The position numbers and the translations under genes are program-made. From NCBI RefSeq assembly GCF_902713615.1, contig NC_052158.1:18844546-18908545 (forward strand): DNA of 64,000 nt, given 5' to 3'. Within the stretch, counting starts at the first letter, position 1; each line of letters begins with the position of its first letter. The notes below the pieces were generated by a model, which was given only the letters and a program-made list of their open reading frames with translations, ran no database searches and was not told the origin of the DNA. Below, in pieces: positions 502 through 48,400 of this stretch. The stretch is from Scyliorhinus canicula. Taxonomy: Eukaryota.

Positions 502-3500
502 CTGAGAGAGTGTGCATCAGGAGAGAGAACAGACAAGACAGAGTAGCAAGTGAGAGAAGTTATAAGTTATTTCATTGTTATACTGCATAGGTAGTTATCT
601 TTACTATATTGTATTTTGTTACTAGTTGAATATTAAGTGAAAAGAACTGAGTTATAATTGATATTATTGAATAAATTAGTTTATCTTTACAAGAAGTCTA
701 TTGTTCATTTCATCAACTCGGCTTATTCAAAAAGAGTAATATTTTATTACATTAAGTAATATAACAGAGTTCAATCATGAAGGTGATTGATTAACAATGA
801 AATAACTTTCTATATACAGATCAACACAATTCCAAACCGGTCTAGTCCCACCAATCATAGTGTTACCCTGATGATTTCCCCACTGCCTGGGTCCACGCCC
901 CAGCACCCGATAGGCCCAGGTTCACGCGTTCTGTCCCTATGGGGTCTGAGCAGGTCACGTGGCCCATGAAGGATCGCCCCATAAAGCGGCCATGCTATCT
1001 CAAAGATCCTCCATCTCATGGACCGAGGTTTGTGTCTGCCTTTCAAACATCTTCTTTGGCTCAGTGTCCACTCTGCTCACTGTCTGTGAAGCACCATTAA
1101 ACAAGGTTCCACATTGTTTCCACAGGGTGCATTGTGTGCAGCTGTTTTTCACTCTTATCATACTGTAACCACACACATGCGGCACAGTGGTTATCACTGC
1201 TGCTTCACGGCACCAGGGACCTGGGTTCAATTCCGGCCTTGGGTGACTGTGTGGAGTTTGCACTTTCTCCCCGTGTCTGTGTGGGTTTCCTCCGGGTGCT
1301 CCGGTTTCCTCCCACAGTCCGAAGATGTGTGGGTTAGTTGAATTGGCCATGATAAATTGTCCCTTAGTGCCCAAAGATGTGCAGGTTACGTCTGGTTATG
1401 CGAGAGGACAGGGTAGTGGGCCTAAGTCGGGTGCTCTTTTAGAGGGTTGGTGCAGATTTGATGGGCCGAATTGCCTTCTTCAGCACGAAAGGAATTCTAA
1501 GAAATGGTTGTTTCATGGCTCCCATTACTGGAGCATGGATTCCTATTACTTACAAGATAATGAATGGCTTGGATAGGATGGACGTAGGGAAGTTGTTTCC
1601 ATTAGCAGGGGAGACTAGGACGCGGGGGCACAGCCTTAGAATAAAAGGGAGTCACTTTAGAACAGAGATGAGGAGAAATTTCTTCAGCCAGAGAGTGGTA
1701 GGTCTGTGGAATTCATTGCCACAGAGGGCGGTGGAGGCCGGGACGTTGAGTGTCTTTAAGACAGAAATTGATAAATTCTTGATTTCTCGAGGAATTAAGG
1801 GCTATGGGGAGAGAGCGGGTAAATGGAGTTGAAATCAACCATGATTGAATGGTGGAGTGGACTCGATGGGCCGAATGGCCTTACTTCCGCTCCTATGTCT
1901 TATGGTCTTATTACCTGCTGGAGGCGATCCTGCCTTTTTCCATTTAATGATAATGGCTATTGACACCAGTAAAGATGGGAATGATAATAAAATGCATAAA
2001 AAGACCGGAATAGCAACCTTTGCTCCTTTCAAGACCTGAGGATGCCCTGGTGCTTTACAGCCAAGAAAGGTACTTTCAGTTAATGAAGTATAATGTCGGA
2101 TAAATAGTTTCCGATTTGTGTACGTCAAGCTTCCACAAACAACAACATGATAATGAGCACATAACCTGTCTTAATGACAATGGATATCACCTCTGTCCTT
2201 TCATAAAGTGCCAGGACATCTTTCATGTCCACCTGAGGGGGTAGACAGGGCTTTATGTTGAATGTCTCCTTCAAAAGACGGCAGCTCTGACCGTGCAGCA
2301 TTCCCTCCCTTCTGCAGCGAGTTGTTAGCCGGGCCGGGATTCTCCCCTACCCGGCAGGGCGGGTAGTGGCAAGGACCACTCTGGCGTCGGGCCTCCCCAA
2401 AGGTGCGGCATTCTCCGCACCTTTAGGGGCTAGGCCCGGGCCGGAGTGGCTCCTGCTCCACCGACCAGCGCAAACGGCCTTTGGCGCCTCGCCGACCGGC
2501 AGCACGTCAGTCCGTGCAGGCGCCGGAGCATCAGCGGCCGCATGCGCGGTGGAGGGGGTCTCTTCCGCCTCCGCAATGGTGGAGGCCGTGGTGGTGCGCG
2601 GAAGAAAAAGAGTGCCCCTACGGCACAGGCCCGCCCACCGATTGGTGGGCCCTGATCGCGGGCCAGGCCACCGTGGGTCAGATCGGGATTTACGCCGGCC
2701 CCGGGCGATTCTCCGACCCTGCGGGGGGTCGGAGAATTCCTCCCCGTGTCACTGGAGTGGGACTTCAACACACAACCTTGAAAAATTGACAAGGTGCCTA
2801 CTGACACCGTGCTACGAGGATAGACTTAACAAGACTGAGGTCGGAATTTGCCGGCTGTTGGGATTCGCTCTCTGTCAGCCTAGGGGAGCTTCAATGGGGA
2901 AATCCCGGACAAGGAGTACAGAATCCCGCCACCAGCCAATGATGTTCTCCGTCCTCGCTTGCAGCAGTAGCGGGGCAGACTCGCAGTGGAGAACCCGGAA
3001 TCACTCACACACAATAGTAAATTTAATATCGTCACCAAGAGCACAATTTAGAATTTGAATGATTGTATAAGGATTTGCTGCCTCATATTCACATAGGTCA
3101 ATTTTCTTTTCGGTTGAAGTTAGGAGTTAAATTTGCCTCACCCTTAGTCAGCATACAAGTTTGAAAACATTTACTCACTCATTAAATATTTTGGTGCAGA
3201 TACTGGGCGGGATTCTCCATCCATTCAAGGCAGCCTAATTCTCCGGTCTCCGCAGTGAACGGGAGACTTGGCTGAGCGCCAAATTCCCCGTCCTCGCCAG
3301 CAGCGTTAGCGGGGAGGACTCGCAACAGAGCCAGTTTTTCAGACGGGCGACGTTGCAACTCTTAAAGAAAAACTGGATAAATATTTGAAGTAGAGCAAGA
3401 TACAGGGCTAAGGAGGAAGCATGGCCAATTGGATTGCAGTTAGTTTGCAAAGATTTTGCGCTCGGCGACGTGGACGCAAATTTTGTGAGACTCAGAAAAC

Positions 3501-3753
3501 GAGAATCTCTTCGGGGAGATCTCATTTACCAATTTGCCTCGCCTGTGACATAACGAGGTTCCTGCCCAGAAAGGTGAGATGTCACGTCGGCGAAGTTTGC
3601 AGCTGCTTTTGATAAATGTCAACAGGCAAAGGAACCCATTGAGGGCTCCCAGGAAGGTATCGCCCCTGAGGGAGGGAGGGACATGTCTGTGCAATAACCT
3701 CGGGGCAGCTCCATTGGTGGGGATTCCCCTTATCTGTGAACGGGGGGTTGTCC

Positions 3754-12400: not shown

Positions 12401-15400
12401 ATTACACCCCTCTGCCTCTCCACCTCTCTGATCCACCACTCCGCCTCTACACCTCTCTCTAACAACACTCTGCCCCTCCGCCTCTCTGTTCCAGCCCTCC
12501 GCCTCTCTGTTCCAGCTCTCCGCCTCTCTGTTCCAGCCCTCCGCCTCTCTGTTCCAGCCCTCCGCCTCTCTGTTCCAGCCCTCCGCCTCTCTGTTCCAGC
12601 CCTCCGCCTCTCTGTTCCAGCCCTCCGCCTCTCTGTTCCAGCCCTCCGCCTCTCTGTTCCAGCCCTCCGCCTCTCTGTTCCAGCCCTCCGCCTCTCTGTT
12701 CCAGCCCTCCGCCTCTCTGTTCCAGCCCTCCGCCTCTCTGTTCCAGCCCTCCGCCTCTCTGTTCCAGCCCTCCGCCTCTCTGTTCCAGCCCTCCGCCTCT
12801 CTGTTCCAGCCCTCCGCCTCTCTGTTCCAGCCCTTCTTCACCTCTATTACACCCCTCTGCCTAACCACCTCTATTACACCCCTCCACCTCTCTATAACAC
12901 CCCTCTGCCTCTCCACCTCTCTGATCTACCACTCCGCCTCTACACCTCTCTAATGCACCCCTCCACCTCTATATTGCACCCTTGGCCTCTCCACCTCTCT
13001 ATTACACTCCTCAGCCTCTCCACCTATTACACACCTCCACCTCTCCGCCCACACCCCTCCGCCTCACCACCTCTCTATTACACCCCTCAGCCTCGCCACA
13101 TATTACACTCCTCCACCTCTCCGCCCACACCCTTCCGCCTCACCACCTCGCTGTTACACCCATCCGCCTCACCACCTCTCTGTTACACCCATCCGTCTCT
13201 CCACCTCTCTGTTACACCTTTCCGTCTCTCCACCTCTAACAACACTCTGCCCCTCCGCCTCTCTGGTACAGCCCTCCGCCTCTCTGGTACAGCCCTCCGC
13301 CTCTCTGGTACAGCCCTCCGCCTCTCTGGTACAGCCCTCCGCCTCTCTGGTACAGCCCTCCGCCTCTCTGGTACAGCCCTCCGCCTCTCTGGTACAGCCC
13401 TCCGCCTCTCTGGTACAGCCCTCCGCCTCTCTGGTACAGCCCTCCGCCTCTCTGGTACAGCCCTCCGCCTCTCTGGTACAGCCCTCCGCCTCTCTGGTAC
13501 AGCCCTCCGCCTCACCACCTCTCTATTACACCCCTCCGCCTCTCCACCCCTCTACCTCACCACCTATTACACCCCTCCGCCTCTCTATTACACCCCTCCG
13601 CCTCTCTATTACACCCCTCCGCCTCTCTATTACACCCCTCCGCCTCTCTATTACACCCCTCCGCCTCACCATTACACCCCTCCGCCTCACCATTACACCC
13701 CTCCGCCTCACCATTACACCCCTCCGCCTCTCCACCTCTCTATTACGCCCCTCTGCCTCTCTATTACGCCTTTCTGCCTCTCTATTACGTCCCTCCGCCT
13801 CTCTATTACGCCCCTCCGCCTCTCTATTACGCCCCTCCGCCTCTCTATTACGCCCCTCCGCCTCTCTATTACGCCCCTCCGCCTCTCTATTACGCCCCTC
13901 CGCCTCTCTATTACGCCCCTCCGCCTCTCTAGTACGCCCCTCCGCCTCTCTAGTACGCCCCTCCGCCTCTCTAGTACGCCCCTCCGCCTCTCTAGTACAC
14001 CCCTGCGCCTCTCTATTACGCCCGTCTGCCTCTCTGTTAGACCCCTCCACCTCTCTATTACACCCCTCCACCTCTCTATTGCACCCCTCCACCTCTCTAT
14101 TGCACCCCTACATCTCTCCACCTCTATTACCACCCTCTGCCTCCACTTCTCTATTACACCCCTCCGCCTCTATTACGTCTCTCCACCTATCTATTACAAC
14201 CCTCCACCTCTCTATTACACCCTCCGCCTCCCCACCTCTCTATTACACCCCTACGTCTCCCCACCTCTATTACACCCCTCCGCTTCACCACCTCTCTATT
14301 ACACCTCTTCACCTTTGTATTACAACCCTCCGCCTGTCTATTGCACCCCTCCGCCTCTCTATTAAACCCCTCCGCCTCTCCACCTCTCTGTTACACCACT
14401 CCACCTCACCACCTCTATATTGCACCCCTCTGCCTCTCCACCTCTCTATTACACTCCTCCACCTCTCCGCCCACACCTCTCCGCCTCTCTCGAACACCAC
14501 TCTGCCTCTCCACCTCTCTATTACACCCTTCCGCTTCCCCACCTCTCTCTAACCCCCTTCTGCCTCTCCACCTCTCTATTACACCCCTCCACATCACCAC
14601 ATCTCTATTACACCCCTCCACCTCTCTAATACAGCCCTCCACCTCTGTTACAGCCCTCCACCTCTCCATTACACCCCTCCGCTTCACCACCTCTCTATTA
14701 CACCCCTCTGCCTCAGCACCCTTCCGTTACATCTCTCTGCCTCTCTATTACGCCCCTCCGCTTCTCTATTACGCCCCTCCGCCTCTCTATTACGCCCCTC
14801 CGCCTCTCTATTACGCCCCTCCGCCTCTCCACCTCTCTATTACGCCCCTATGTCTCTCCACCTCTATTACAATCCTCTGCTTCCACTTCTCTATTACACC
14901 CCTCCACCTCTCTATTACACCCTCCGCCTCCCCACCTCTCTATTACACCCCTACTTCTCTCCACCTCTATTACACTGCCTCTCTATTACACCTCTTCACC
15001 TCTGTATTACAACCCTCCACCTCTCCATTACACCCCTCCGCTTCACCGCCTCTCTATTACACCCCTCTGCCTCAGGACCCTTCCGTTACATCCCGCTGCC
15101 TCACTACCTGTTACACCCCACCTCTCCATTACACCTCTCCATCACTCTATTGCACCCATCTGCCCCTCTATTACACCCCTCTGCTTCTCCACCTCCCCAT
15201 TACACCCTTCCGCCTAGCCACCTCTCTATTACACCACTCTGCTTCTCCAATTCCCCATTACACCCCTCCGCCTCACTACCTCTCCATTACATCCCTCTGC
15301 CCCACTTCTCTATTACACCGCTCCACCTCATCAACTAGTTATTACACCACTCCATCTCTCCACCTATATTACACCCCTCCACTTCTCTATTGCAACCCTC

Positions 15401-18400
15401 CACCTCATCACCTCTATTACACCCCTCATCTCTCGACCTCTTATTGCACCCCTCCACCACTCCTCTATTACACCCCTCCGCCTCTCTATTACACCCTTCC
15501 ACCTCTTCACCTCTATTACACCCCTCTGCCTCACCACCTCTCTATTACACCCCTCTGCCTCACCACCTCTCTATTACACCACTCATCCTCCCAATCTCAC
15601 TATTACATCCCTCCACCTCTCTATTACACCCCTCCGCTTCACCACCTCTCTATTACACCGCTCCACCTCATCAACTAGTTATTACACCACTCCATCTCTC
15701 CACCTATATTACACCCCTCCACTTCTCTATTGCAACCCTCCACCTCACCACCTCTATTACACCCCTCATCTCTCAACCTCTCATTGCACCCCTCCACCAC
15801 TCCTCTATTACACCCCTCCACTTCTCTATTACACCCCTGCGCCTCTCCATTACACCCTTCCACTTCTTCACCTCTATGACACCCCTCTGCCTCTCCACCT
15901 CTATGACACCCCTCTGCCTCTCCACCTCTATTACACCCCTCTGTCTCTCCACCTCTAATACACCCCTCTGTCTCTCCACCTCTAATACACCCCTCTGTCT
16001 CTCCACCTCTAATACACCCCTCTGTCTCTCCACCTCAAATACACCCCTCTGTCTCTCCACCTCTAATACACCCCTCTGTCTCTCCACCTCTAATACACCC
16101 CTCTGCCTCACCACCTCTCTATTACACCCTCCATCTCTCCACATCTCTATTACACCCCTCCGCCTCTCCAGCTCTCCATTACCCCCTCCGTCTCAATTAC
16201 ACCCTTCCGTCTCCCTATTACACCTCTCTGCCTCTCTATTACACTCTGCCTCTCTATTACACCTCTCCAGCTCTCTATTACACCCCTCTGTCTCTCCACC
16301 GCTAGTGCACCCCTCCGCCTCTCTACCACTGCCCTCCGCCTCTCCACCTCCCTATTACATCTCTTCACCTCTAATAGACCCCTCTGTCTCTCCACCTCTA
16401 TTACACCCCTCTGCCTCACCACCTCTCTATTACACCCTCTGCCTCTCCACCTCAATTACACCCATCTGACTCTCTATTACACACCTCCGCCTCTCTATTA
16501 CACCTCTCTATTACACTCCACCTCTCTATTACACCTCTCCACCTCTCTATTGCACCCCTCCACCTCTGTATTACACACCACCGCCTCTCTATTGCACCCC
16601 TCCACCTCTGTATTACACACCACCGCCTCTCTATTACACCCCTCTGCCTCACCATCTCTTTATTGCACCCCTCTGCCTCTCCACCTCTCTAATATACCGC
16701 TCTGCCTCTCCAGCTCCCTCTTGCACCACCGCCTCTCCACCTCTCTATTACAGCCCTCTGCCTCTTCACCTCTCTATTACACACCTGTCTCTCCACCTCT
16801 CTATTACACCCCACGCTTCTCCACCTCTCTATTACACCTGTCCACTTCTCCACCTCTTTATTACACCCCTCTGCCGCTATTTTAAAAAAATATTTTTATT
16901 AAATGCTTTAACAAAAATATACAGAATATCAGAATAACAAGCTATCAACCCAATAAACAACCACAATCCTCCAGCCCCCCCCCCCCCCCCCCCCCCCCCC
17001 GCACCCCAGCCCCTTGCCACATCCCGCCTTCCCCATTTTAACCTCCATTACTCTTCCCCTCAATAACTCCCCCTTGATGACCCCTCATTCCTCCTTGAAG
17101 AAATCAATGAACGTTTTCCACCTCCGGGCGAACCCATCTCCCGCAGAGAGAACTTGATCTTCTACAACCTCAGGACTTCCGCTCACCAGAACCCCAGCCT
17201 TCAGCGGCTCCGAATCCCACCAACACAGCAAAGCCCGTCTCTGGGTTATCAGGAAGGCAAAGGCCAATACACTGGCATCTCCCCCCCCCCCCCCCCCAAC
17301 CCCCCCCGGAACCCCGACTCCTGGGTCTTCCGACACACCAAATATCACAACCTCCGGACTCATAGAACCATAGAATTTACAGTGCAAAAGGTGGCCATTC
17401 GGCCCATCGAGTCTGCTCCGGCCCCTAGAAAGAGCACCCTACTTAAGCCCACAACTCCACCTTATCCCCGTAACCCATCAACCCCACCTAACCTTTTTCG
17501 ACACTCAGGGCAATTTACCCTGGCCAACGGTGACTCAGAGTCACCCCCACACCGAGAACCTCGGACACAACATCTGAGAACCCCTGCCTGAATCCCCTCA
17601 GACTAGGACAGGCCCAGAATATGTGGACCTGATTCACAGGCCTACCCCCCCCCCCCCCCCACCCCACCCCCCCACCCCCACACACCTGCTACACCTATCT
17701 TCCACCCTCTCAAAGAACCTGCTCAGTCTCGCCACCGTCATGTGGGACCTATGCACCACTTTAAACTGAATGAGGCTTAACCTCGCACACGATGAGGACG
17801 TGTTCACCCTCCGCCCACACAAACCCTGAGTCAACCCATTGACTTTGCTGAAAAACGACTGAGGGACAGAGATGGGGAGGTTCTGAACATGATCAGAAAT
17901 CTAGGCCACAACGTCATTCTCACTATCTGCACCCTCCTTGCCAGCGACAGCGGCAAAATGTCCCATCTCTTTAAATCTGCCTTCATCCCCTCCACCAATC
18001 GGACCAAGTTCAGTCTATGCAGCTGGGCCCAGCGCCGCACCACCTGAATACCAAGGTACCTAAAGCTCATCCCCACCAACCTGAATGGTAACTCCCCTAA
18101 CCTCCTTCTCCGCCCTCTGGCATTGATTGGGAACATCTCATTCTTACCCATGTTCAATTTATATCCCCAAAACCGGCCAATTTCCCCCAAAGCTGCTCAA
18201 CGGATTTGAAATGTATAATAACAAGTCATCCACATACAGCAAAACCCCATGTTCGGCACCCCCTGCACAATCCTCTCCTTAGACGCCCTAAGCGCCATTG
18301 CCAATGGCTCTATTGCCAAGGCGAAAAGCGTCGGGGAGAGCGGAGACCCCTGCCTAGTCCCACGGTAAAGCCCAAACTCACTCAGTTCATCTGCACACTT

Positions 18401-21400
18401 GCCACCGGCATCTTATACAGCAGCCAAACCCAATCCACAAAACCCTGCCCGAACCCAAACCGCCCCAGCCATCTTGAACAGATATGCCCATTCTACCCAG
18501 TCAAAGTCCATGGCCACCACTACCTAAACCCCCTTCCCTGCTCCTCCGAGGGCATCAGACTCACATTATGTAACCTCCGCACATTGACAACAGTTGCCTT
18601 CCTTCAACAAAACCTGTCTGATCCTCCCCAATCACCCCCGACACAATTCTTATACTCAATGCCCCAGCCAATGAAGGCAAGGCTGCCATATGCCTTCTTG
18701 ACTACCTTCTCCACCAGTGTTTCCTCTTTCAGTGACCTGTGGACCGTACACATAGATCTCTCTGACTGTCAATACTCTTGTAGTATGAAAACTCCTTCAC
18801 CCTTAGCCTCCCAAACCTCCACAGGTTCTCCCCCCCCGACCCATGCGCCCATGAATCCCCTCAACTCCCTATCCACTGCAGACACCCTCGGCGATTTTGA
18901 ACTCTAGTCCAGGACCGTATTAAATCACCTCCATAATCAACCGGTAAGTGTCCAAGTCCGAAATCTTCCCTAATATTCACGTCATAAAATCCACATCATC
19001 CCAATTCGCAGCACAGACATTTACAAGGACCACCGGCATCCGCTCCAATTTCCCACTGCTCCCAGCTCTCCCTTCCGAGCTGTTCCGCACCAACCACACC
19101 CATTTCAGCAACCCCCTCCCCCCAACAAACAACCAACCCCCTCGCCTTCCTCCTGATGACTCCCCACTTCACTTCCATTAACTAGCCCGCCCAGATAGCA
19201 TGGTGGCCCCCACCCAAGGCCGCTAACATCCCCTCCCCCCTCACAAAAGGCACACTGACTATCGTCACTCCCCCATTGAAACCCACCCTGAACTACCCAT
19301 CCCATACACTCTTCCACACACACAAAGCTCCTCTCCAAAGTTCAGTGTCCTTACACTCCTCCAGGTCCATGGTTCCTCATAAAGCCCATCGCCTCCTCTG
19401 GCGAATCAAAATAAAACCGCTGCTTATGGTGTGTCACCCACAAACGGGCACGATACAAAACCCTAAACTTCACACCGTTCGTGAAGAGGGCAACCTTTAT
19501 CCCGTTGAACCTGACCCTCCTCTTCGCCAACACCGCACCCAGGCCTTGGTAGACCCACAGCTCACTACCTTCCCAGGTAAACTTCCTGGTCTGCCTCGTC
19601 CATTTTAAAATATTTTCTTTGTCCAAGAATCGATGCAGCCGCACCACCATCGCCCTCGGTAACTCACCAACCTGAGGCCTCCTCCTCAGCACCCTGTGCG
19701 TCCAATTCACCTCGAGGAGCGGGTCAAAGGCCCCTTCCCCCATCAACTGCTGCAACATCCTCACCACATACTTCCCGGCCTCCGCTCCCTCAGACATCCC
19801 GACGATCCTCAGGTTCCTCTCCTGAAGCAATTCTCCAGGTCCTCCAATTTCATTCTCAGCCACTTCTGGCTGTCCAAGACCATCCCCAACTCCCCCTCCA
19901 ATGAGACGATCCACCGCTCATGCTCCCCCACCGCCTCCTCCACCTCTGATTCGCTAGGCCCAGAGCCTTCAATCTCTGCCCCACTCTCTCAATCGCAGTT
20001 CTGAGCGGCTCCACCACCTTGTCCAGGTCATCCAGAGCCTCCTTCCCCTGCTGCTGGAATTTCCCATCCAAACACTCCACCAGCTGCTCCGTCGACCACC
20101 GGGCAGTAATGATGCCCCCTTGCCCTCTGCCATCGTAGCCTGTGGCGCACCATGGAAACTGTCCTGCTTCAGCTGCTCTCTCTTTTTCGTGGCACTTCTC
20201 GTCCTCTGATCCATACACCAATCTCACCAGAGGAGAATTACCTTCCCGGGGCACTCATTCACCTTTTGCCCTCGAAAATCCCCCAAAACAGGTGGGAAAA
20301 TCCACCTTGAGCGGATGACACCAAATTTGCGACCGCTCACTCCATGGTTGCCCCTCCACCTTTCTATTACACACCTCCTCGCTCCACATCTCTATTACAC
20401 CCCTCCACCTCTCTATTACACCCCTCTGCCTCTCCACCTCTCTATTACACACCTCCACCTCTCTATTACACACCTCCACCTCTCTATTACACACCTCCAC
20501 CTCTCTATTACACACCTCCACCTCTCTATTACACACCTCCACCTCTCTATTACACACCTCCACTTCTCTATTACACACCTCCACTTCTCTATTACACACC
20601 TCCACCTCTCCACCTATTACACTCCTCCACCTCTCTATTACACACTTACACCTCTCCACTTCTCTATTACACACCTGCACCTTGCCACTTCTCTATCACA
20701 CACCTCCACCTTTCCGCTTCTCTATTACACCCCTCTGCCTCTCCACCTCTCTTTTCTTCTCTAAGACACTTCAAGTCTTTGGTTATCTGATCTAATAGCT
20801 TCATTTCTGTCTCAGTGTCGTATGTACCTATGAAACGTGTTGGGATGATCTATTACAATAAAGGTGCTATATAAATTTAAGTAGCTGTTGTTCTCAGTTG
20901 AGCACCATGACCCACTGAACCATCACCCCAAGTGATTACTAGCTCCAAGACAAAACAAACATGAGCATTCATAATACCTTCAGCCAGTAGCCTGCACAGT
21001 AGGGCCGCAAAGAGAATGATAAATGAAAGCATTGCAATGACCTGCAAGAATAGGAGGACGTTTCGCTGAAAATCCATACCTGGAAAAGAAACGAATGTCC
21101 ATCAATATTACTCACAGAACTGTAGACTGTGACAACACAGGGGAAGGCCACTTGGCCCATCATATCTGTGCAATCTCTTTGGAAAGTTGACCAATTAGCC
21201 CCACCGTCCCAATTCCCCCCCCCCCCCCCCCCCCCACTATTTAGCCAATTCCCCTTTGAAAGTTCCGATTGAATCTGCTTCCTTATCATTTCTTATGTTA
21301 TCACTAGTGCAGAAGGAGGCCATTTGGCCCATCGAGTCTGCAGTGACCCTCTGAAATGACACCCCACCTAGGGTCAGGCCCCCACCCTATCCCCGTAACC

Positions 21401-24400
21401 CAGTAACCCCACCTAACCGTTGGACACTAAGGGCAATTTAACATGGCCAATCCACCTAACCTGCACATCTTTGGACTGTGGGAGGAAACCGGAGCACCCG
21501 GAGGAAACCCACACAGACACGGGGAGAAAGTGCGAACTCCACAGAGTCACCCACGGCCGGAATTGAACCCGGGTCCCTGGTGCTGTGAGACAGCAGTGCT
21601 AATCTCTGTGCCACCGTGCTGCCCACTTCCACCGCCTTTTTCAGCAAAGAATATTCACACTTTGGAATAAATCACTCGACGCATCAGAAGCCGAATTGGA
21701 GATGAATGAAATGAAATGACATGAAAAATGAATGAAATTCACTTATTGTCACGAGTAGGCTTCAATGAAGTTACTATGAAAAGCCCCTAGTCGCCACATT
21801 CCGGCGCCTGTCCGGGGAGGCTGGTACGGGAATCGAACCGTGCTGCTGGCCTGCTTCGTCTGCTTTAAAAGCCAGCGAATTAGCTGAGTGAGCTAAACCA
21901 GCCACTGAGATGACGCAGTGTTACAGTTAACTGCCTCTCATGTCTCAATGATTAAGTTATAAGAGTTTCAAACTTCTGACAGCAAACTGTGAAAATAACA
22001 TGTTTTTCTTACTTTGCTTGTCGCTGCGCAAACATTGAACTATGATACAGAAGATATTCGCAGCAGCAAAAATCAGTGCAACAATGGACAATTCCATTGC
22101 GTAGTGAATCAGAGGTGGAAGACCTGGAACAGAAAACAGTATATTAAACTTATATTCAAATCAGACTTTAAATTGCAACAGGATGTCCTTCCCCCTCTAA
22201 AGATGTGGCTATCACTGGGCTGTTTTGGGGAGATTTACCAGAATGTTAGCAGATGAATCAGTTATGTGGAGAGGAAGCAGATCATTCTACCGAGAGCAGA
22301 TCTGAGCTTTGCAGTCCTGCCACATTCAGCCGTGAATGGTGGTGGACAATTAAACAACTCACTGGAGGCGCCTCAAATATCCCCATCCTCAATGATGGAG
22401 GAGCTCAGCACATATAGACAAGGCTGAGGCATTCATACCAATCTTCAGCCAGAGTGATGAGTGGTGATCTATCTCGGTCTCCTCCGGAAGTCCCCAACAC
22501 CACAGATGTCAGTCTTCAGCCAATACAATTCATTCCATGTGATATCAAGAAATGGCTGAAGGCACTGGGTACTGCAAAGGCTATGGGCCCTGACAATATG
22601 CCAGCAATAGTACTGAATTTGCCTCTCCATCATCAGCATGTGATGGAAGGAATCATCAACAGTGCTGTCAAGCAGCACTTACTCAGCAATAACCTGCTCA
22701 CGGACGCTCAGTTTGGGTTCCGCCAGGGTCACTCAGCTCCTGAACTCATTACAGCCTTGCTTAAAACATGGACAAAGAGCTGAATACCAAAGGTGAGGTG
22801 AGAGTGACTGCCCTTGACATCAAGGCAGCATTTGACCGAGTGTGGCATCAAGGAGCCCGAGCTAAACTGGTCAATAGGAATCAGGGTGAAATCTCTCGCT
22901 GGTTGGAGTCATACCTGGCACAACGGAAGATGGTTGTGGTATTTGGAGGTCAATCATCTAATCTCCAGGACATCACTGCAGGAGTCCCTCAGAGCAGTGT
23001 CCTAGGCCCAACCATCTTCAGTTGCTTCATCAATGACCTCCCTTCCAACATTAGGTCAGAAGTGGGGATGTTTGTGGATGGCTACACAATGTTCAGCACC
23101 ATTCACGACTCCTCAGATAATGAAGCAGTCCATGCCCAAATACAGCAAGACCTGGACAATACCCAGGCTTGGGCTGGGCTGACAAGTGGCAAGTTACATT
23201 CGGGCTACACAAGTACCAAGCAATGACCATCTCCTACAAGAGAGGATCTAATCACCACCCTTTGACATTCAATGGCACTACCATCGCTGAATCCCCCACG
23301 ATCAACATCCTGGGGGTTACCATTGACCAGAAACTGAACTGGACTAGCCATATTAATACTGTGGCTAGCAGGGCAGGTCAAAGGCTAGGAATCCTACGGT
23401 GAGTAACTCACCTTCTGATGCCCCCAAAGCCTGTCCACCACCTAGAAGGCACAAGTCAGGAGTGTAATGGAATACTCTCCACTTGACTTTATGAGTGCAG
23501 CTCCAACAACACTCAAGGAGCTCGACTCCATCCAGGACAAAGCAGCCCCGCTTGATAGTTCCCCCTTCCACAAACATTCAAACCCTCCACCACCGATGAA
23601 CAGTGGCAGCCATGTATACCATCTACAAGATGTACTGCAGTAACTCACCAGCTTTCCTTAGGCAGCACCTTCCAAACCACTACCATCTAGGACAAGAGCA
23701 GCAGATACCTGGGAACCCCACCACCTGGACGTTCCCCTCCAAGACACTTGCCACCCTGACTTGGAAATATTTTGCAGTTCCTTCACTGTCGCTGGGTCAA
23801 AATCCTGGAACTCCCTCCCTAACAGCACAGTGTTGTAATGACATCTCTATGACTGCAGCGGTTCAAGAAGGCATCTCAACACCACCTTCTAGGGCAACTA
23901 GGGATGGGCAATAAATACTGGCCTAACCAGCAACACCCACATCCCATAAATGAATTTCCCGTTAAAAAAAAAGAGACGTGTTCAGGGGAGATTGCAAAGA
24001 ATTGTTCAAAACTCTGAGGGATTTTGATAGAAAGGAAGGAAGACTTACATTTGTATAACATCTGTCACTACCACAGGACATCCCAAATCCAATTATGTAG
24101 TTTGTGCAGTGCGGTTGCTATGGTACTATGGGAAAGGTCGGAGCCAATTTCTACAAAGGTTCCCGCAAACAGCAAGGTGATAATGGCCAGTTTGTCTTAT
24201 TAATTAAGAAAGATTTGACTGCATAAATGAGAAACTATCTTGACTGAGAATCAGTTTGGGTGGAGATAAGAAATAGCAAGAGAAAGAATCACTAGTGGAA
24301 GTGGATTATAGGCTCCTGACAGAATAAACAGAGTAAAATCTGGAAATAATTGAGGCTTGCAAGAAAGATACAGAAATAATCACAGACGATTTAATCTTCA

Positions 24401-42400: not shown

Positions 42401-45400
42401 TCCCTCGTGGTTCCCTGGTCCAACCCTCTGTTACCCTTAAAACTGCATTCCTTTCCAACAGCACCTTTCTATGCAATCGCAGAAGGCAAAACACCCGCCC
42501 CTTTATCTCCACCCTCTTCACCGGCCAATCCCCCAGATACTGAAGTAAGAGTTTCAACTGCACGTCCTTCAATTTAACCGACTGTGTTGCTGCTCAAAAC
42601 GCAATCTCCTCTAAATTGGGGAAAGGAAATGCAGATTGGATGGCTGCTTTGTAGAACACCTTCGCTCAGCCCGCTCCTATCACCAAGGGGAATTCAGGAC
42701 AGGGTGGTTTCCAGAGGGTGGGTAGGAGAAGGGAGTGTCTCTGACATTAGCAAGGAACTTATGGGGTCAGAGGAGATGCAGACTGAGGAGCTGAAGCGTA
42801 AGTGGGAGGTGGAGCTGGGAGGAGAGATAGAGGATGGTCTCTGAGCGGACGCGTTGAGTAGTTAATATGTCCACAACATGTGCCGGGCTCAGCCTGATAC
42901 AATTTAAGGTGGTTCATCGGGCTCATAGGACAGTGGCCCGGATGACCAGATTCTTTGGGGTGGAAGACAGGTTTGCAAAGTGTGTGGGAGGGACAGCGAA
43001 CCCTGTCCACATATTCTGGACATGTCTGAAGCTTCGGGGATTTTGATAGGGGTTTGCGGATGTCATGTCCACGGTGTTAAAAACAAGGGGGGCACTGAGT
43101 CCAGAGGTGGCGATTTTCGGGGTGTCGGAAGACCGGGAATCCAGGAGAAGAAAGAGGCAGACGTTCTGGCCTTTGCTTCCCTGATAGCCCGGAGACGGAT
43201 ATTATTAGCCTGGAGGGACTCAAAGCCCATGAAGTCGGAGACCTGGCTATCGGACATGGCTAGCTTCCTCTGTTTGGAGAAAATCAAGTTCGCCTTGAGA
43301 GGGTCAATGTTAGGGTTCACCCGGAGGTGGCAACCGTTCGTCGGCTTCTTTGCGGAAAATTAATCATCAGCAGAAGGGGCGGGTGGGTTAGTTTAGCTTA
43401 GAGTAGGGGGTTAATAAAGGTGGGACCTGTAAGGGAGGGAGACGGCTTTTGCACTATGTTTATAGATTCATGTACATTGTTTATTTTGTTGTTGTTGTAA
43501 AACCAAAAATACCTCAATAAAATGTTTATTAAAAAAAAAGAACACCTTCGCTCAGTTGCCCCAACGCCAGCATTTCTGTCCTTGTTCCAATGTTCCAATG
43601 CAGCCCAGAGCAAATTGTAAGAACAGCATCTTATCTTTCGATTAGGCACTTTCACAGCCTTTTGGATTTAACTTCAGACCATGAAAGTTCTTTAATTTTG
43701 ATATGATATTCCAACCGTCTCCCCCACTGGGCTATCTGTATCTTGTTTTGCTTTCAGAGTGCTGCCCCTTGTTCTGCTATTAACACATTACCTTCCTTTA
43801 TGTCATTATTAAAATATTGTTTCGTCTTTAACACTACGATGAACACTCTCTTTGTCTTGTGTCCATGACATCCTTGTCAATCTCTCCTGACTTCTCACCT
43901 ATCCCTGACCTTCTATTCTGCTCCACTTTCCCAACCTCCTCTCCAGCTACATAATCCATCACATTTCTACCCCCTTCAGCTCTGAAGTGTTCGTTTTTTA
44001 TTTCAGATTTCCACTATCTGCAATATTTTGCTTTAATTTACCTCTCCCCTACTCAATATCACTTTGCCATGTCACAGCACAGGAGTCTGACTGGACAGCT
44101 CCATCCAATTTCTCTGATTTTGATCATTGTTCTGCTCCAACATCTTTTGGTCTATGGGTAAGAGACCCAGCTTCCATGAAGATCACAACCACAACTCCTG
44201 TGACAGAGGCCAGGATTTCCAGGCGAAATTCCTGCCAAAACTCAAAGGACTTTTGCTGGTTCACCAAATTTTGCATCCGGCTTGCATTGGGTCCCAACAT
44301 GGACGGGAGAAGAAAGTCCCGCTCAGAAAGTTCTTAAGCAATGTACTGAGCAATTCAGAAGCTGTATACATTTCAATATGTGGAAATAAATTGAAGTACT
44401 CACCATAGACAAACAATTTGATTGTTTTCGCCAAAAATCCATTCACAGTAATGCTATAATTCCCCTGATCAGCAAGTTGTAAATTATTTATTGTCAGCGA
44501 CAAAGTAACGCTATTCAAATATAGTCGGGATTTGAACTGTTCACTTGGCACGAAGTCATGATGATTTTCTTTGTAATCCAAAATAGTTACTGGATCTTTC
44601 CCATTGACGGTGAGCACCCATAAAATGTCACTGTCGTTGAGAACACTTTCACATTTAGGATCCAGTAAAACTGATGAACCAACATTGCCAAATATGTTTT
44701 TGCTTCCGGGTAATTGATCTAAAAGAACAAATTTAATAATTTAAAACAGTGGCAATGAAATACTCAAATACAGCAATGATCATAAAGAATAACTATAGCA
44801 AATGAGAACTGCATTATATGAGCAAATAACATCAGGAGTTCTGGATATATTTGTATATTTGGGGCTGGAGTTTCCGCTTGTTTGTACTGATAATAGCAAT
44901 GCAATTTGGGTTGGATTGACCGGAGCAATGGAGGAATTTTAAATTAATTCAAAACTAATTACCGTAATATTTTCTGTAATTTTTTAAGCTGTTTTAAAGT
45001 TCCAATTTACCCTCATCTGGTCCTGCCCAAAATAAATGTCATCAATTTCACAGGTTCAGGAAAGATCTTTAAATTCTGCACTTCGGTGCACAGACTCCAC
45101 TAGACACATTTTTGAAGTTCTGCAGATCAAGATGATTTAATTTTGGATCTCCTGGCATACGACCTAAGGTCTTCTCCCTCTCCCTCCTCCTGAATAAAGA
45201 CTGGCCTACATCAATGGAACCATCAAATGGCTCAATATAGTTTTGTAATTTTCTGTGATTATTACTCAGGTTTCTCAGAGCTGAAGGGCTTCTTAAAAAT
45301 GCTTATTTTGGGTGATTGTCAGTTTTCAGCTGTATTAATAAAATAGTAACAGATTATCACTCAAATGGATAAAGGAATATTTTTAATGAAACGAGGAACT

Positions 45401-48400
45401 ATTACACTCTGAAACACTGCACAATTAAGCTTGCACATTCAGTTTCCCTTTTTTGATCATATAAATCAATGATCATATTGGATTGAAAATTTGAACTGAA
45501 CTCTGCAATTTCAAACACATTTTCCCTATTGTGCCTCAAGTAGACTTTCTATCCCCTGATGGCTACTACACCCAGACTGCGGCCTAAATCAGAGGAAAGT
45601 ACAGCACAGCAGAAGGCTATTCTGGCAATCAAGACCGCTCTGCCTCTTTCACAAAACAATCCAGTTAAGTGCACAACCTGTTCATTCACAATATCCCTGC
45701 AATTTTACTCCAAGTGTGCTGGACCCATGTGAACCAACTTGGATTTTCGCCATGGTCACTGCACAGTTAAACCTTCTTTTCTCTATCCATCTTTTAACTG
45801 AATGAATGCAAAGGGGGTGAGGTTATAAACCCTCTTTTCATATTTTGACATTTCCTGAGGGTCAGTGTAGACCCGCTGGGCTGAATGGCCTCCTTCTGCC
45901 CTGTAAGGATTGTGTGGACTGTCTGCAAATAAATTAACTTTCTGAGTTCATCTCATCTTGAGTTTGCTATGAATAGGGGATTGGATCACATCAACCGCGA
46001 GAAGTTGGGAAATGCACTTATAAAATGGAAAGCAAGACGGTGTGGGAGGAGAAATTGGTGCTGCTTATATTCACCGCCACCTGTCTGTAATAATGCTCAC
46101 ACTCAATCCATCTGTCTTTATTCGGGAGAAGGTAGCCTACAATAGGAGGGAGGGAGAAGACCACAGGTCCTATGCCAGGAGACCCAAAACCTTTCGAGCA
46201 GGAGGCTGCAGAGCTGACAGGGGAGGACAGCGACCATGCTTGTGCTGAGTACAAGGTCTGACTCTCCCAGAAATCCTCTGAGGAAGCATCCATTATTCTA
46301 ACAACTTCGGAAAATCAAGGTGAATGATGTGTGCAATGTCAAAGGCAGTCGCTCATTCTCGCTTTCCTTCATTCCAGCTGCAATCGGGATGGCAAGCAGG
46401 CCAATATCCTTCAAGAAAAAAGTCCGAGCCTCCAGCCCGCCCTGGTTGAGTTAACACCAGTACAGACATCATAGCATTCATCTACACCATCCACCAGTGC
46501 AGAGGCACACAACGTTGCATTATAGATCTACTGTAAGATCAGGGTCACACTCGAGCAGTCACATATCTACAGCAGGTGAGACAGTTGTGATATTATGTGA
46601 AATGTTCAGAATACAAAGGATTAGTGTCATATCATAATTAACCAGTAGATGGATGCAGAACTATATAAAGCACTGACTCACAGGCTTCTGGGAAAAGGTA
46701 GAATGCAGTTATAGCTAGAGTGTCGCGACTCGTGTTAGTAGAGTGTAGATTGTTTTCCGTCGGAGTAAATGGTCGAGCTTTAATTCGTAGTTTAAATAAA
46801 TGTTAGCTTTGTTAGTGAACACTACATAAGAACAGGGAGCAGGAGTAGGCCATCTGGCCCCTCGAGCCTGCTCCGCCATTCAATGAGATCATGGCTGATC
46901 TTTTGTGGACTCAGCTCCACTCTACCCGTCCGAACACCATAATCCTTTATTCCTTTATTCTTCAAAAAACTATCTATCTTTATCTTGAAAATATTTGATG
47001 AAGGAGCCTCAACTGCTTCACTGGGCAGGGAATTCCATAGATTCACAACCCTTTGGGTGAAGAAGTTCCTCCTAAACTCAGTCCTAAATCTACTTCCCCT
47101 TATTTTGAGGCTATAGCCCCCGAGTTCTGCTTTCACCCGCCAGTGGAAACAACCTGCCCGCATCTATCCTGTCTATTGCCTTCATAATTTTATATGTTTC
47201 TATGAGATCCCCTTCTAAATTCCAATGAGTACAGTCTCAATCTACTTAACCTCTCCTCGTAATCCAACCCCCTCAACTCTGGGATTAACCTAGTGAATCT
47301 CCTCTGCACACCCTCCAGTGCCAGTACATCCTTTCTCAGGTAAGGAGACCAAAACTGAACACAATACTCCAGGTGTGGCCTCACTAACACCTTATACAAT
47401 TGCAACATAACCTCCCTAGCCTTAAACTCCATCCCTCTAGCAATGAAGGACAAAATTCCATTTGCCTTCTTAATCACCTGTTGCACCTGTAAATCAATTA
47501 TTTATGATTCATGTACTAGGCCACCCAGGACCCCTCCACAGCAACATGTTTTAATATTTTATCATTTAAATAATAACCCCTTTTGCTGTTATTCCTACCA
47601 AAATGGATAACCTCACATTTGTCAACATTGTATTCCATCTGCCAGACCCTAGCCCATTCACTTAAACTATCCAAATCCCTCTGCAGACTTCCAGTATCCT
47701 CTGCACTTTTTGCTTTACCACTCATCTTAGTGTCATCTGCAAACTTGGACACATTGCACTTGGTCCCCAACTCCAAATCATCAATGTAAATTGTGAACAA
47801 TTGTGGGCCCAACGCTGATCCCTAAAGGACACCACTAGCTACTGATTGCCAACCAAAGAAACACCCATTAATCCCCACTCTTTGCTTTCTATTAATTAAC
47901 CAATCCTCTATCCATGCTACTACTTTACCCTTAACACCATGCATCTTTATCTTATGCAGCAACCTTTTGTGTGGCACCTTGTCAAAAGCTTTCTGGAAAT
48001 CCAGATATACCACATCCATTGGATCCCCGTTTTCTACTGCACTGGTAATGTCCTCAAAAGATTCCACTAAATTAGTTAGGCATGATCTGCCCTTCTACTG
48101 TATGTGTATTTGCGGGGTTTAGGGTAAGATGTGGGGTGGCCTTAGGGTGGGTGGGGTGATGTCGTACGGCTGTTTTCTTTATGGGTTTTCAAGCAGGAGT
48201 TGGGTGGACGGGTTCGGACTGAGGGGTAAACGGGGTGTTCGGGGAGCTGGTGGGGGGGACTGACAATGGGAGTGGCCCTGGAGGAGGCGGGGCCCGGCAG
48301 GGCAAAAGCGCGGGCTTTCTGTGGGATTCCCACGCTGGGAGAGGGAGGGGGCGTGTTTTCTTTTCCCGCGCAGGAGCGGGGGAGGGTGGACTGGTTGATC

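Follow-up and report, generated by a model that had tools for sequence, protein, structure and literature searches.

The gene described here raises the question of how a receptor of the immunoglobulin (Ig) superfamily came to have a membrane domain in which each helix is encoded by a small exon of its own, and whether this domain is related to that of CD47, which has been described as the only five-pass immune receptor and as having a unique fold (PMC8410850). The gene is located on the minus strand of a stretch of 64,000 nucleotides (nt) of the genome of the catshark Scyliorhinus canicula (contig NC_052158.1, positions 18,844,546 to 18,908,545). This whole stretch will be referred to as the window, and positions are given within it. 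The explanation that we favor, which taken as a whole appears to us quite probable, is that the catshark gene is a member of an old and unnamed receptor family of the Ig superfamily, whose proteins consist of a V-C2 ectodomain, a membrane part of five helices and a short tail.

Gene structure and membrane exons

The coding exons appear in the order signal peptide, V, V, C2 and membrane exons, and all of them, from the signal peptide to the membrane, are joined via phase-1 introns, as indicated by the splice sites and by tblastn of the annotated product (Table 1). This product, NCBI entry P0001 (S. canicula, 377 aa, named 'hepatocyte cell adhesion molecule-like'), was a 100% match in a protein search with the second V exon, a search that also retrieved orthologues in other sharks and rays. 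The second V domain is CD2/SLAM-like, without the canonical disulfide, and has 76% identity to protein P0003 of S. torazame. The C2 exon carries an extra Cys characteristic of the family, located five residues ahead of the F-strand Cys.

A first-pass annotation of this DNA had proposed five transmembrane exons of 111, 102, 126, 96 and 138 nt, all of phase 1-1 and each encoding one helix. All five have indeed AG/GT borders, a phase 1-1 open frame and one strongly hydrophobic stretch of 19 residues. A scan for AG...GT-bounded frames of these lengths, open in phase 1-1 and with the requirement of a hydrophobic 19-mer, located the five exons on the minus strand. When hydrophobic phase 1-1 frames were sought free of any length constraint on both strands of the 64 kb, just these five loci were found, together with one TG-repeat artefact. 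The background across all nine frame/length classes was ~2 unrelated loci in 128 kb, and with so few background loci the five-exon pattern is not attributable to chance.

We have made a profile of 30 membrane domains of the family and run it on every open frame of the window. There were exactly four matches, corresponding to exons 1-4, each of them to its proper part of the model (32-44 bits). These exons have good splice sites, and their identities to the S. torazame orthologue P0003 are 53, 82, 84 and 69%, respectively. Membrane exons 1-4 are genuine, and to this extent the first-pass proposal holds; the fifth exon is doubtful and is dealt with separately below.

Table 1. Exons and related features of the catshark receptor gene, in the order of transcription.
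Feature	Position	Strand	Length, phase and content	Evidence
Signal-peptide exon	61642-61717	-	76 nt; start codon at 61717; end in phase 1	tblastn of annotated P0001; sequence and donor read
V-set Ig exon 1	44404-44718	-	315 nt, phase 1-1	Pfam V-set E 2.9e-6; splice sites; 100% vs P0001
V-set Ig exon 2	34235-34540	-	306 nt, phase 1-1	Pfam V-set E 1e-8; splice sites; 100% vs P0001
C2/I-set Ig exon	30591-30860	-	270 nt, phase 1-1	Pfam I-set E 3.2e-15; splice sites
Membrane exon 1	22013-22123	-	111 nt, phase 1-1, one helix	Family profile 43.9 bits, model positions 2-46; part of P0001
Read-through of exon-1 donor into intron	21957-22012	-	18-residue tail and stop	P0001 residues 320-377 contiguous with 22133-21960
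Membrane exon 2	20978-21079	-	102 nt, phase 1-1, one helix	Family profile 32.9 bits, model positions 43-89
Membrane exon 3	10008-10133	-	126 nt, phase 1-1; membrane helix and short cytoplasmic helix	Family profile 37.3 bits, model positions 74-118
Membrane exon 4	4557-4652	-	96 nt, phase 1-1, one helix	Family profile 32.0 bits, model positions 90-151
Candidate exon 5 (doubtful)	1915-2052	-	138 nt, phase 1-1, hydrophobic	AG/GT borders, open frame

An unnamed family of five-helix receptors

When the membrane-domain profile was compared with a set of 1.84 billion representative proteins, 46 were found at E <1e-3, more than half of them (24) at <1e-10. The members with a name belong to many sharks and rays, Callorhinchus (a chimaera), Pleurodeles, Ambystoma, Rhinatrema, turtles, Rhea, gulls, chicken, quail, platypus and echidna, and no teleost or therian was noticed among the named family matches. 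Structure searches contributed further family-like models, one of them an unnamed Xenopus-type accession. Nearly all these proteins have ~420-470 residues, with a V domain, a C2 domain and, judging from hydropathy, mostly five hydrophobic segments (three or four in predicted isoforms and fragments). In chicken, short assembled contigs (~1.5 kb, taken as messenger RNA) encode the full five-helix form of 430 residues. The names assigned to these proteins are automatic and inconsistent ('hepatocyte cell adhesion molecule-like', '2B4-like', 'SLAM family member 9-like'), examples of the family being chicken LOC422295, platypus LOC100681856 and painted turtle LOC101941157, and a description of the family was not found in literature searches. 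In the catshark several copies are present on the same chromosome (P0013, P0039 and P0043).

The copy in the window shares with this family the type of ectodomain, the profile of helices 1-4, the plan of one helix per phase-1 exon and the extra C2 Cys. It differs in an additional N-terminal V domain (V-V-C2), as is also the case of the catshark paralogue P0013, in the loss of several conserved membrane residues, in having no family-type fifth exon within the window and in its annotation as a single-pass protein. Among the better known receptors, those of the CD2/SLAM group, CEACAM and HEPACAM share with the family phase-1 Ig exons and a C2 domain preceded, on the side away from the membrane, by a V domain that lacks the canonical disulfide; in Pfam, the catshark gene gives V-set and I-set matches, while the matches to 2B4 are faint. 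CD2/SLAM receptors, however, span the membrane once and have long tails with tyrosine motifs, whereas members of the unnamed family combine five helices with a short tail. When the aligned family tails were read by eye, with no motif search run, no tyrosine motif was seen. The protein would act as a cell-surface recognition molecule.

In the tails of family members from sharks, a ray and a turtle, the basic stretch behind helix 5 is succeeded by a short motif, Pro-Leu-(Gln/Asn), and then by acidic residues. As for the S. torazame protein P0003, its V and C2 domains and helices 1-3 are of the type of the catshark gene, helix 4 is identical to that of the paralogue P0011, and helix 5 and the tail are nearly so. 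The P0003 gene model spans 86 kb, and it could be a chimeric gene model, share 3' exons common to neighbouring genes or be the product of gene conversion.

The family is a second one joining Ig domains to a five-helix membrane body, beside CD47, called the sole five-pass immune receptor (PMC8410850). It is widespread in non-therian jawed vertebrates under misleading automatic names and multi-copy on the catshark chromosome. The gain from the exon finding as such is modest, and the interest lies mainly in the family itself.

Conservation of the exon plan

We have derived the exon lengths of family genes in relatives of the catshark from exact spliced mapping. Membrane exons 1-5 measure 117, 102, 120, 96 and 93 nt in rhea and 129, 102, 123, 96 and 93 nt in painted turtle. 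In the bamboo shark exons 1, 2 and 4 measure 117, 102 and 96 nt, the third falling in an assembly gap and the contig ending after the fourth. All the mapped membrane introns of these three genes are of phase 1, and a short tail exon then shifts to phase 0. Furthermore, exon 2 has 102 nt and exon 4 has 96 nt in the three relatives and in the catshark window alike. Since the bamboo shark, turtle and rhea genes show the same layout, one helix per symmetric phase-1 exon is an inherited plan and was not built in the shark. The modular membrane domain described in the first-pass annotation is thus found again in all three relatives.

The relation between exons and helices was examined on an AlphaFold model of the membrane domain of the basking shark, obtained from a 30-sequence alignment with a predicted local distance difference test (pLDDT) of 84.8; an earlier run on seven sequences, with a pLDDT of 49.9, was discarded. 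The helices of the model comprise residues 7-36, 44-76, 80-103 plus 105-115, 118-150 and 158-195, and the exon blocks correspond to residues 4-42, 43-76, 77-118, 119-150 and 151-185. According to this model, every intron falls in an inter-helix loop, 0-7 residues from a predicted helix end. The near-invariant Gly4 and Gly77 are the split codons of membrane introns, so that their conservation is in part due to the exon-side splice consensus. Other conserved motifs are specific to one exon, namely a Trp at the end of helix 2, Cys-Arg at the start of helix 4 and Lys-Gly-Cys ahead of helix 5.

Phase-1 introns are the rule across Ig-superfamily genes, and because they are so general a shared phase is weak evidence of kinship. 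The helix-per-exon pattern is real, but it is inherited and typical of Ig-superfamily genes. Being conserved across jawed vertebrates, from sharks to birds, this plan lets one ask whether the dropping of a single helix, with the flip of topology that it brings, is regulated or splicing noise, and whether the putative disulfide between Ig domain and membrane loop (see below) is convergent or inherited.

Origin of the membrane domain

Two origins had been suggested for this pattern in the first-pass annotation, the assembly of the domain by duplication or shuffling of a transmembrane exon and a deep common ancestry with the membrane domain of CD47. For the first of these, in which a single ordinary transmembrane exon of phase 1-1 would have been duplicated or shuffled repeatedly, it speaks that the five exons are all symmetric and do not differ much in size (87-129 nt in the family as a whole), exons of this class being those that can be copied or moved without loss of frame. 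We have cut the 30-sequence alignment at the introns and compared the five blocks profile versus profile. Their mutual similarity reached probabilities of 0.4-8%, no clearer than the 0.4-3.8% of reversed-sequence controls, and each exon has its own conserved motifs, as described above. A common origin of the five membrane exons is unsupported, and we regard this route as very improbable, even if a duplication that was old enough could have lost all signal.

CD47 and the family have in common an Ig ectodomain, five helices, a short and variably spliced tail and a Cys placed in the outer loop that connects helices 4 and 5. We take exon 1 of CD47 to encode the leader and exon 2 the IgV domain. 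As the human gene has 13 exons in all and exons 8-13 are for the tails (PMC10902115), by count about five small exons are left for the membrane domain. In CD47 a bond between Cys33 and Cys263 connects the Ig domain to the membrane domain and is functionally required (PMC10902115; PMC8410850), and a conserved Gly is located at the outer top of helix 3 (PMC8410850). The family has a near-invariant Gly at the same place, although this residue is the split codon of a phase-1 intron and the splice consensus explains it in part. Along the same lines, the extra Cys of the C2 domain and the near-invariant Cys of the helix 4-5 outer loop are both present in 75 family proteins, the single exception being the basking-shark paralogue P0028 (Cetorhinus maximus), in which both are replaced. 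This co-occurrence fits a CD47-like inter-domain disulfide. The C2 domain would be tied by it to the helix 4-5 outer loop, as the V domain of CD47 is, and the helix bundle would then hold or orient the ectodomain and present a surface for lateral partners.

Searches for similarity between the two membrane domains gave little. Neither the five exons nor six membrane domains of the family matched Pfam CD47 at E up to 10, and single membrane exons produced only noise against Pfam. The 30-sequence family profile did not find CD47 among the chain sequences of the whole PDB (E up to 10), and its one match was an unrelated designed protein. With the model of the basking-shark domain we have carried out structure searches by Foldseek against PDB, by VIA-align against 48,161 representatives and on the Foldseek top 1000, and against the Atlas and the Swiss-Prot models. 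CD47 was not among the matches listed by Foldseek against PDB, by the two VIA-align searches or by the Atlas, and such a missing match does not show that the folds differ. The best matches among solved structures were cytochrome b561 and designed bundles, with Z ~10, which is below the level that is meaningful for helical bundles. Bovine CD47 appeared 18th in the Swiss-Prot models (E 0.21, template-modelling (TM) score 0.32, root-mean-square deviation 17), and the top matches around it (cytochrome b561, MsrQ and bundles of G-protein-coupled receptors) look generic. The Atlas search by shape yielded generic bacterial bundles and nothing else, the ESM Atlas search by features no usable match, and in the structure cluster library the confident matches were to family members only.

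There are also differences in the ectodomain. CD47 has a single V domain with the canonical disulfide, whereas the unnamed family has V-C2 of the CD2/SLAM type, and the partner of the loop Cys is in the V domain in the former and in the C2 domain in the latter. As the partner domain differs, convergence is at least as likely as inheritance. The membrane domains showed no similarity in the sequence and profile searches, and in the listed matches of the structure searches none beyond the low 18th place of bovine CD47. An ancestry shared with CD47 is unsupported. A single ancestral module for CD47 and the family, made of Ig and five helices with each helix on a phase-1 exon of its own, seems to us unlikely, the more so as phase-1 exons are general in the superfamily. 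We would give the same low credit to the idea that the family is a missing sister lineage of CD47, an ancient second five-helix Ig receptor lost in therians that shares with it the exon module and the Ig-loop disulfide. If this were true, the 'unique' membrane fold of CD47 would gain relatives and its origin would become traceable.

Skipping of membrane exons in relatives

Every membrane exon is a multiple of three in length, so that any of them can be removed while keeping the reading frame. The first-pass annotation had concluded that this allows in-frame skipping, in which the removal of an even number of exons would keep the tail cytoplasmic and that of an odd number would flip it. In the NCBI annotation of relatives there are pairs of isoforms from the same gene that differ by exactly one membrane exon: exon 1 is skipped in Pristis (39 aa), exon 3 in Heterodontus (42 aa) and platypus (38 aa), and exon 5 in Callorhinchus (34 aa) and platypus (29 aa). 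In other species single models lack one exon, which is exon 2 in Stegostoma, exon 4 in Heptranchias and exon 5 in Chiloscyllium plagiosum. No skip of two exons was found among the annotated isoforms of relatives. In-frame skipping is therefore seen in annotation, and the even-number form that had been predicted is not, single exons being dropped and never two. Such odd skips, which may be no more than splicing noise, would leave the tail extracellular, and a skip of any of exons 1-4 would also turn the cysteine loop to the inside of the cell.

The candidate fifth exon and the state of the catshark copy

The hydrophobic frame of 138 nt proposed as fifth exon is well placed, downstream of exon 4, on the right strand and in phase 1-1. 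Only ~0.01-0.04 frames like it in position, strand and phase would be expected by chance in the 4.5 kb that follow exon 4, so that it is perhaps a real exon. Pure chance was considered as an explanation and rejected, since the placement is too unlikely, and the frame stays in the doubtful category. Against the fifth-helix profile of the family the candidate reaches -1.8 bits, a value equalled or exceeded by 90% of shuffled versions of it. The window frame that holds it reaches 4.5 bits against the full family profile, and does so in the wrong part of the model. It has no Cys at all and lacks the Gly-Cys loop motif, more than 90% conserved before helix 5 of the family, and its length is beyond the 87-102 nt of the family fifth exons (93 in rhea, 93 in turtle, 102 in chimaera and 87 in platypus). 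The acceptor is weak, with a poor pyrimidine tract and 'aaag'. A better 'ccag' acceptor at 2046, six bases in, would shorten the exon to 132 nt and would supply the junction Gly that is usual in the family.

The fifth helix of P0003 had no match in the window by tblastn, and no orthologue protein aligned to the candidate. The family profile found no family-type fifth helix with Gly-Cys in any frame of the window, where the Cys of the helix 4-5 loop was likewise not found. Words of exon 4 occur in likely-RNA runs from seven studies. Five of the runs that hold exon 4 (X1, X4, X5, X8 and X9) contained 0 of 24 sampled words of 1915-2190, and one other likely-RNA run, from the same sample as an exon-4 holder, contained a fraction of 0.17 of them.

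Taken together, the 138-nt exon is most likely not the fifth helix of the family, although it could represent an exon that has diverged or sees little use. Introns in this gene reach ~10.8 kb and just 4.5 kb are left after exon 4, for which reason the family's fifth exon probably lies downstream of the window, if it has not been lost. That the first-pass model is fully right, with the 138-nt (or 132-nt) exon as a real and strongly diverged fifth helix, we consider doubtful, even though its placement, the junction Gly available at 2046 and the one run with some of its words speak for it, as does the fact that exon 4 of the catshark copy is diverged too.

The only annotated product of the catshark gene is single-pass. 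P0001 owes this to read-through of the exon-1 donor into the intron and not to exon skipping, and it ends 18 residues past helix 1 with a stop at 21957-21959. Just past this stop there is a short interspersed nuclear element (SINE) resembling a transfer RNA, at 21700-21900 on the minus strand. No canonical polyadenylation signal is present anywhere in the first membrane intron. Several residues that are conserved elsewhere are changed in this copy: the near-invariant Trp at the outer end of helix 2 is replaced by Arg in exon 2, and exon 4 has three substitutions (Cys by Tyr, Asp by Ala and Pro by Ala) at sites that do not vary in the alignment of the shark and ray subfamily. No multi-pass product of the gene was found in protein database searches, and a protein search anchored on the exon-4 frame and aimed at assembled transcript fragments gave no candidate.

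The catshark copy may thus be under relaxed constraint or moving to a single-pass form. One could go further and see in it a paralogue that is turning single-pass, with membrane exons 2-5 as decaying relics. The read-through product, the altered residues, the lack of a family-type fifth exon in the window and that of a multi-pass product would all be in line with such a decay, which is also compatible with the explanation that we favor. On the other hand, the frames of exons 2-4 are still open and their splice sites good, the conservation of exons 2 and 3 with respect to S. torazame (82-84%) equals that of the Ig exons, exon 4 seems to be transcribed, given the likely-RNA runs of seven studies in which its words appear, and the intron in which P0001 ends has no canonical polyadenylation signal. 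On balance we hold the decay of these exons to be possible, but less likely than not.

Several points weigh against the explanation that we favor. The only NCBI product stops after helix 1, so that exons 2-4 could be little used. The splicing of the catshark gene is predicted from its sequence, and the RNA nature of the runs that hold exon 4 is a guess. Dismissing the fifth exon may be wrong, given how unlikely its placement is by chance. The skipped isoforms of the relatives are automatic gene models, and the disulfide is proposed from the conservation of the two cysteines and their one joint loss.

Repeats and mobile elements in the introns

A C-rich minisatellite with units of 21, 27 and 29 nt (consensus ~CTCCACCTCTCTATTACACCC) is located at 12240-16900 and 20320-20790. 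It takes up a large part of the intron that separates membrane exons 2 and 3, and it makes the GC skew extreme and gives rise on either strand to long open frames that are spurious. Another tandem array, at 27963-29710, lies in the intron that goes from the C2 exon to membrane exon 1 and has a unit of 43 nt and a higher-order period of 271 nt. Mobile elements were identified by Pfam in the introns as well. The relic of a Harbinger-type DDE transposase is found at 7565-8113 (minus strand), between membrane exons 3 and 4, and other introns contain reverse-transcriptase fragments like those of long interspersed nuclear elements (LINEs), at 22768-23226 (plus strand) and 47519-47821 (minus strand).

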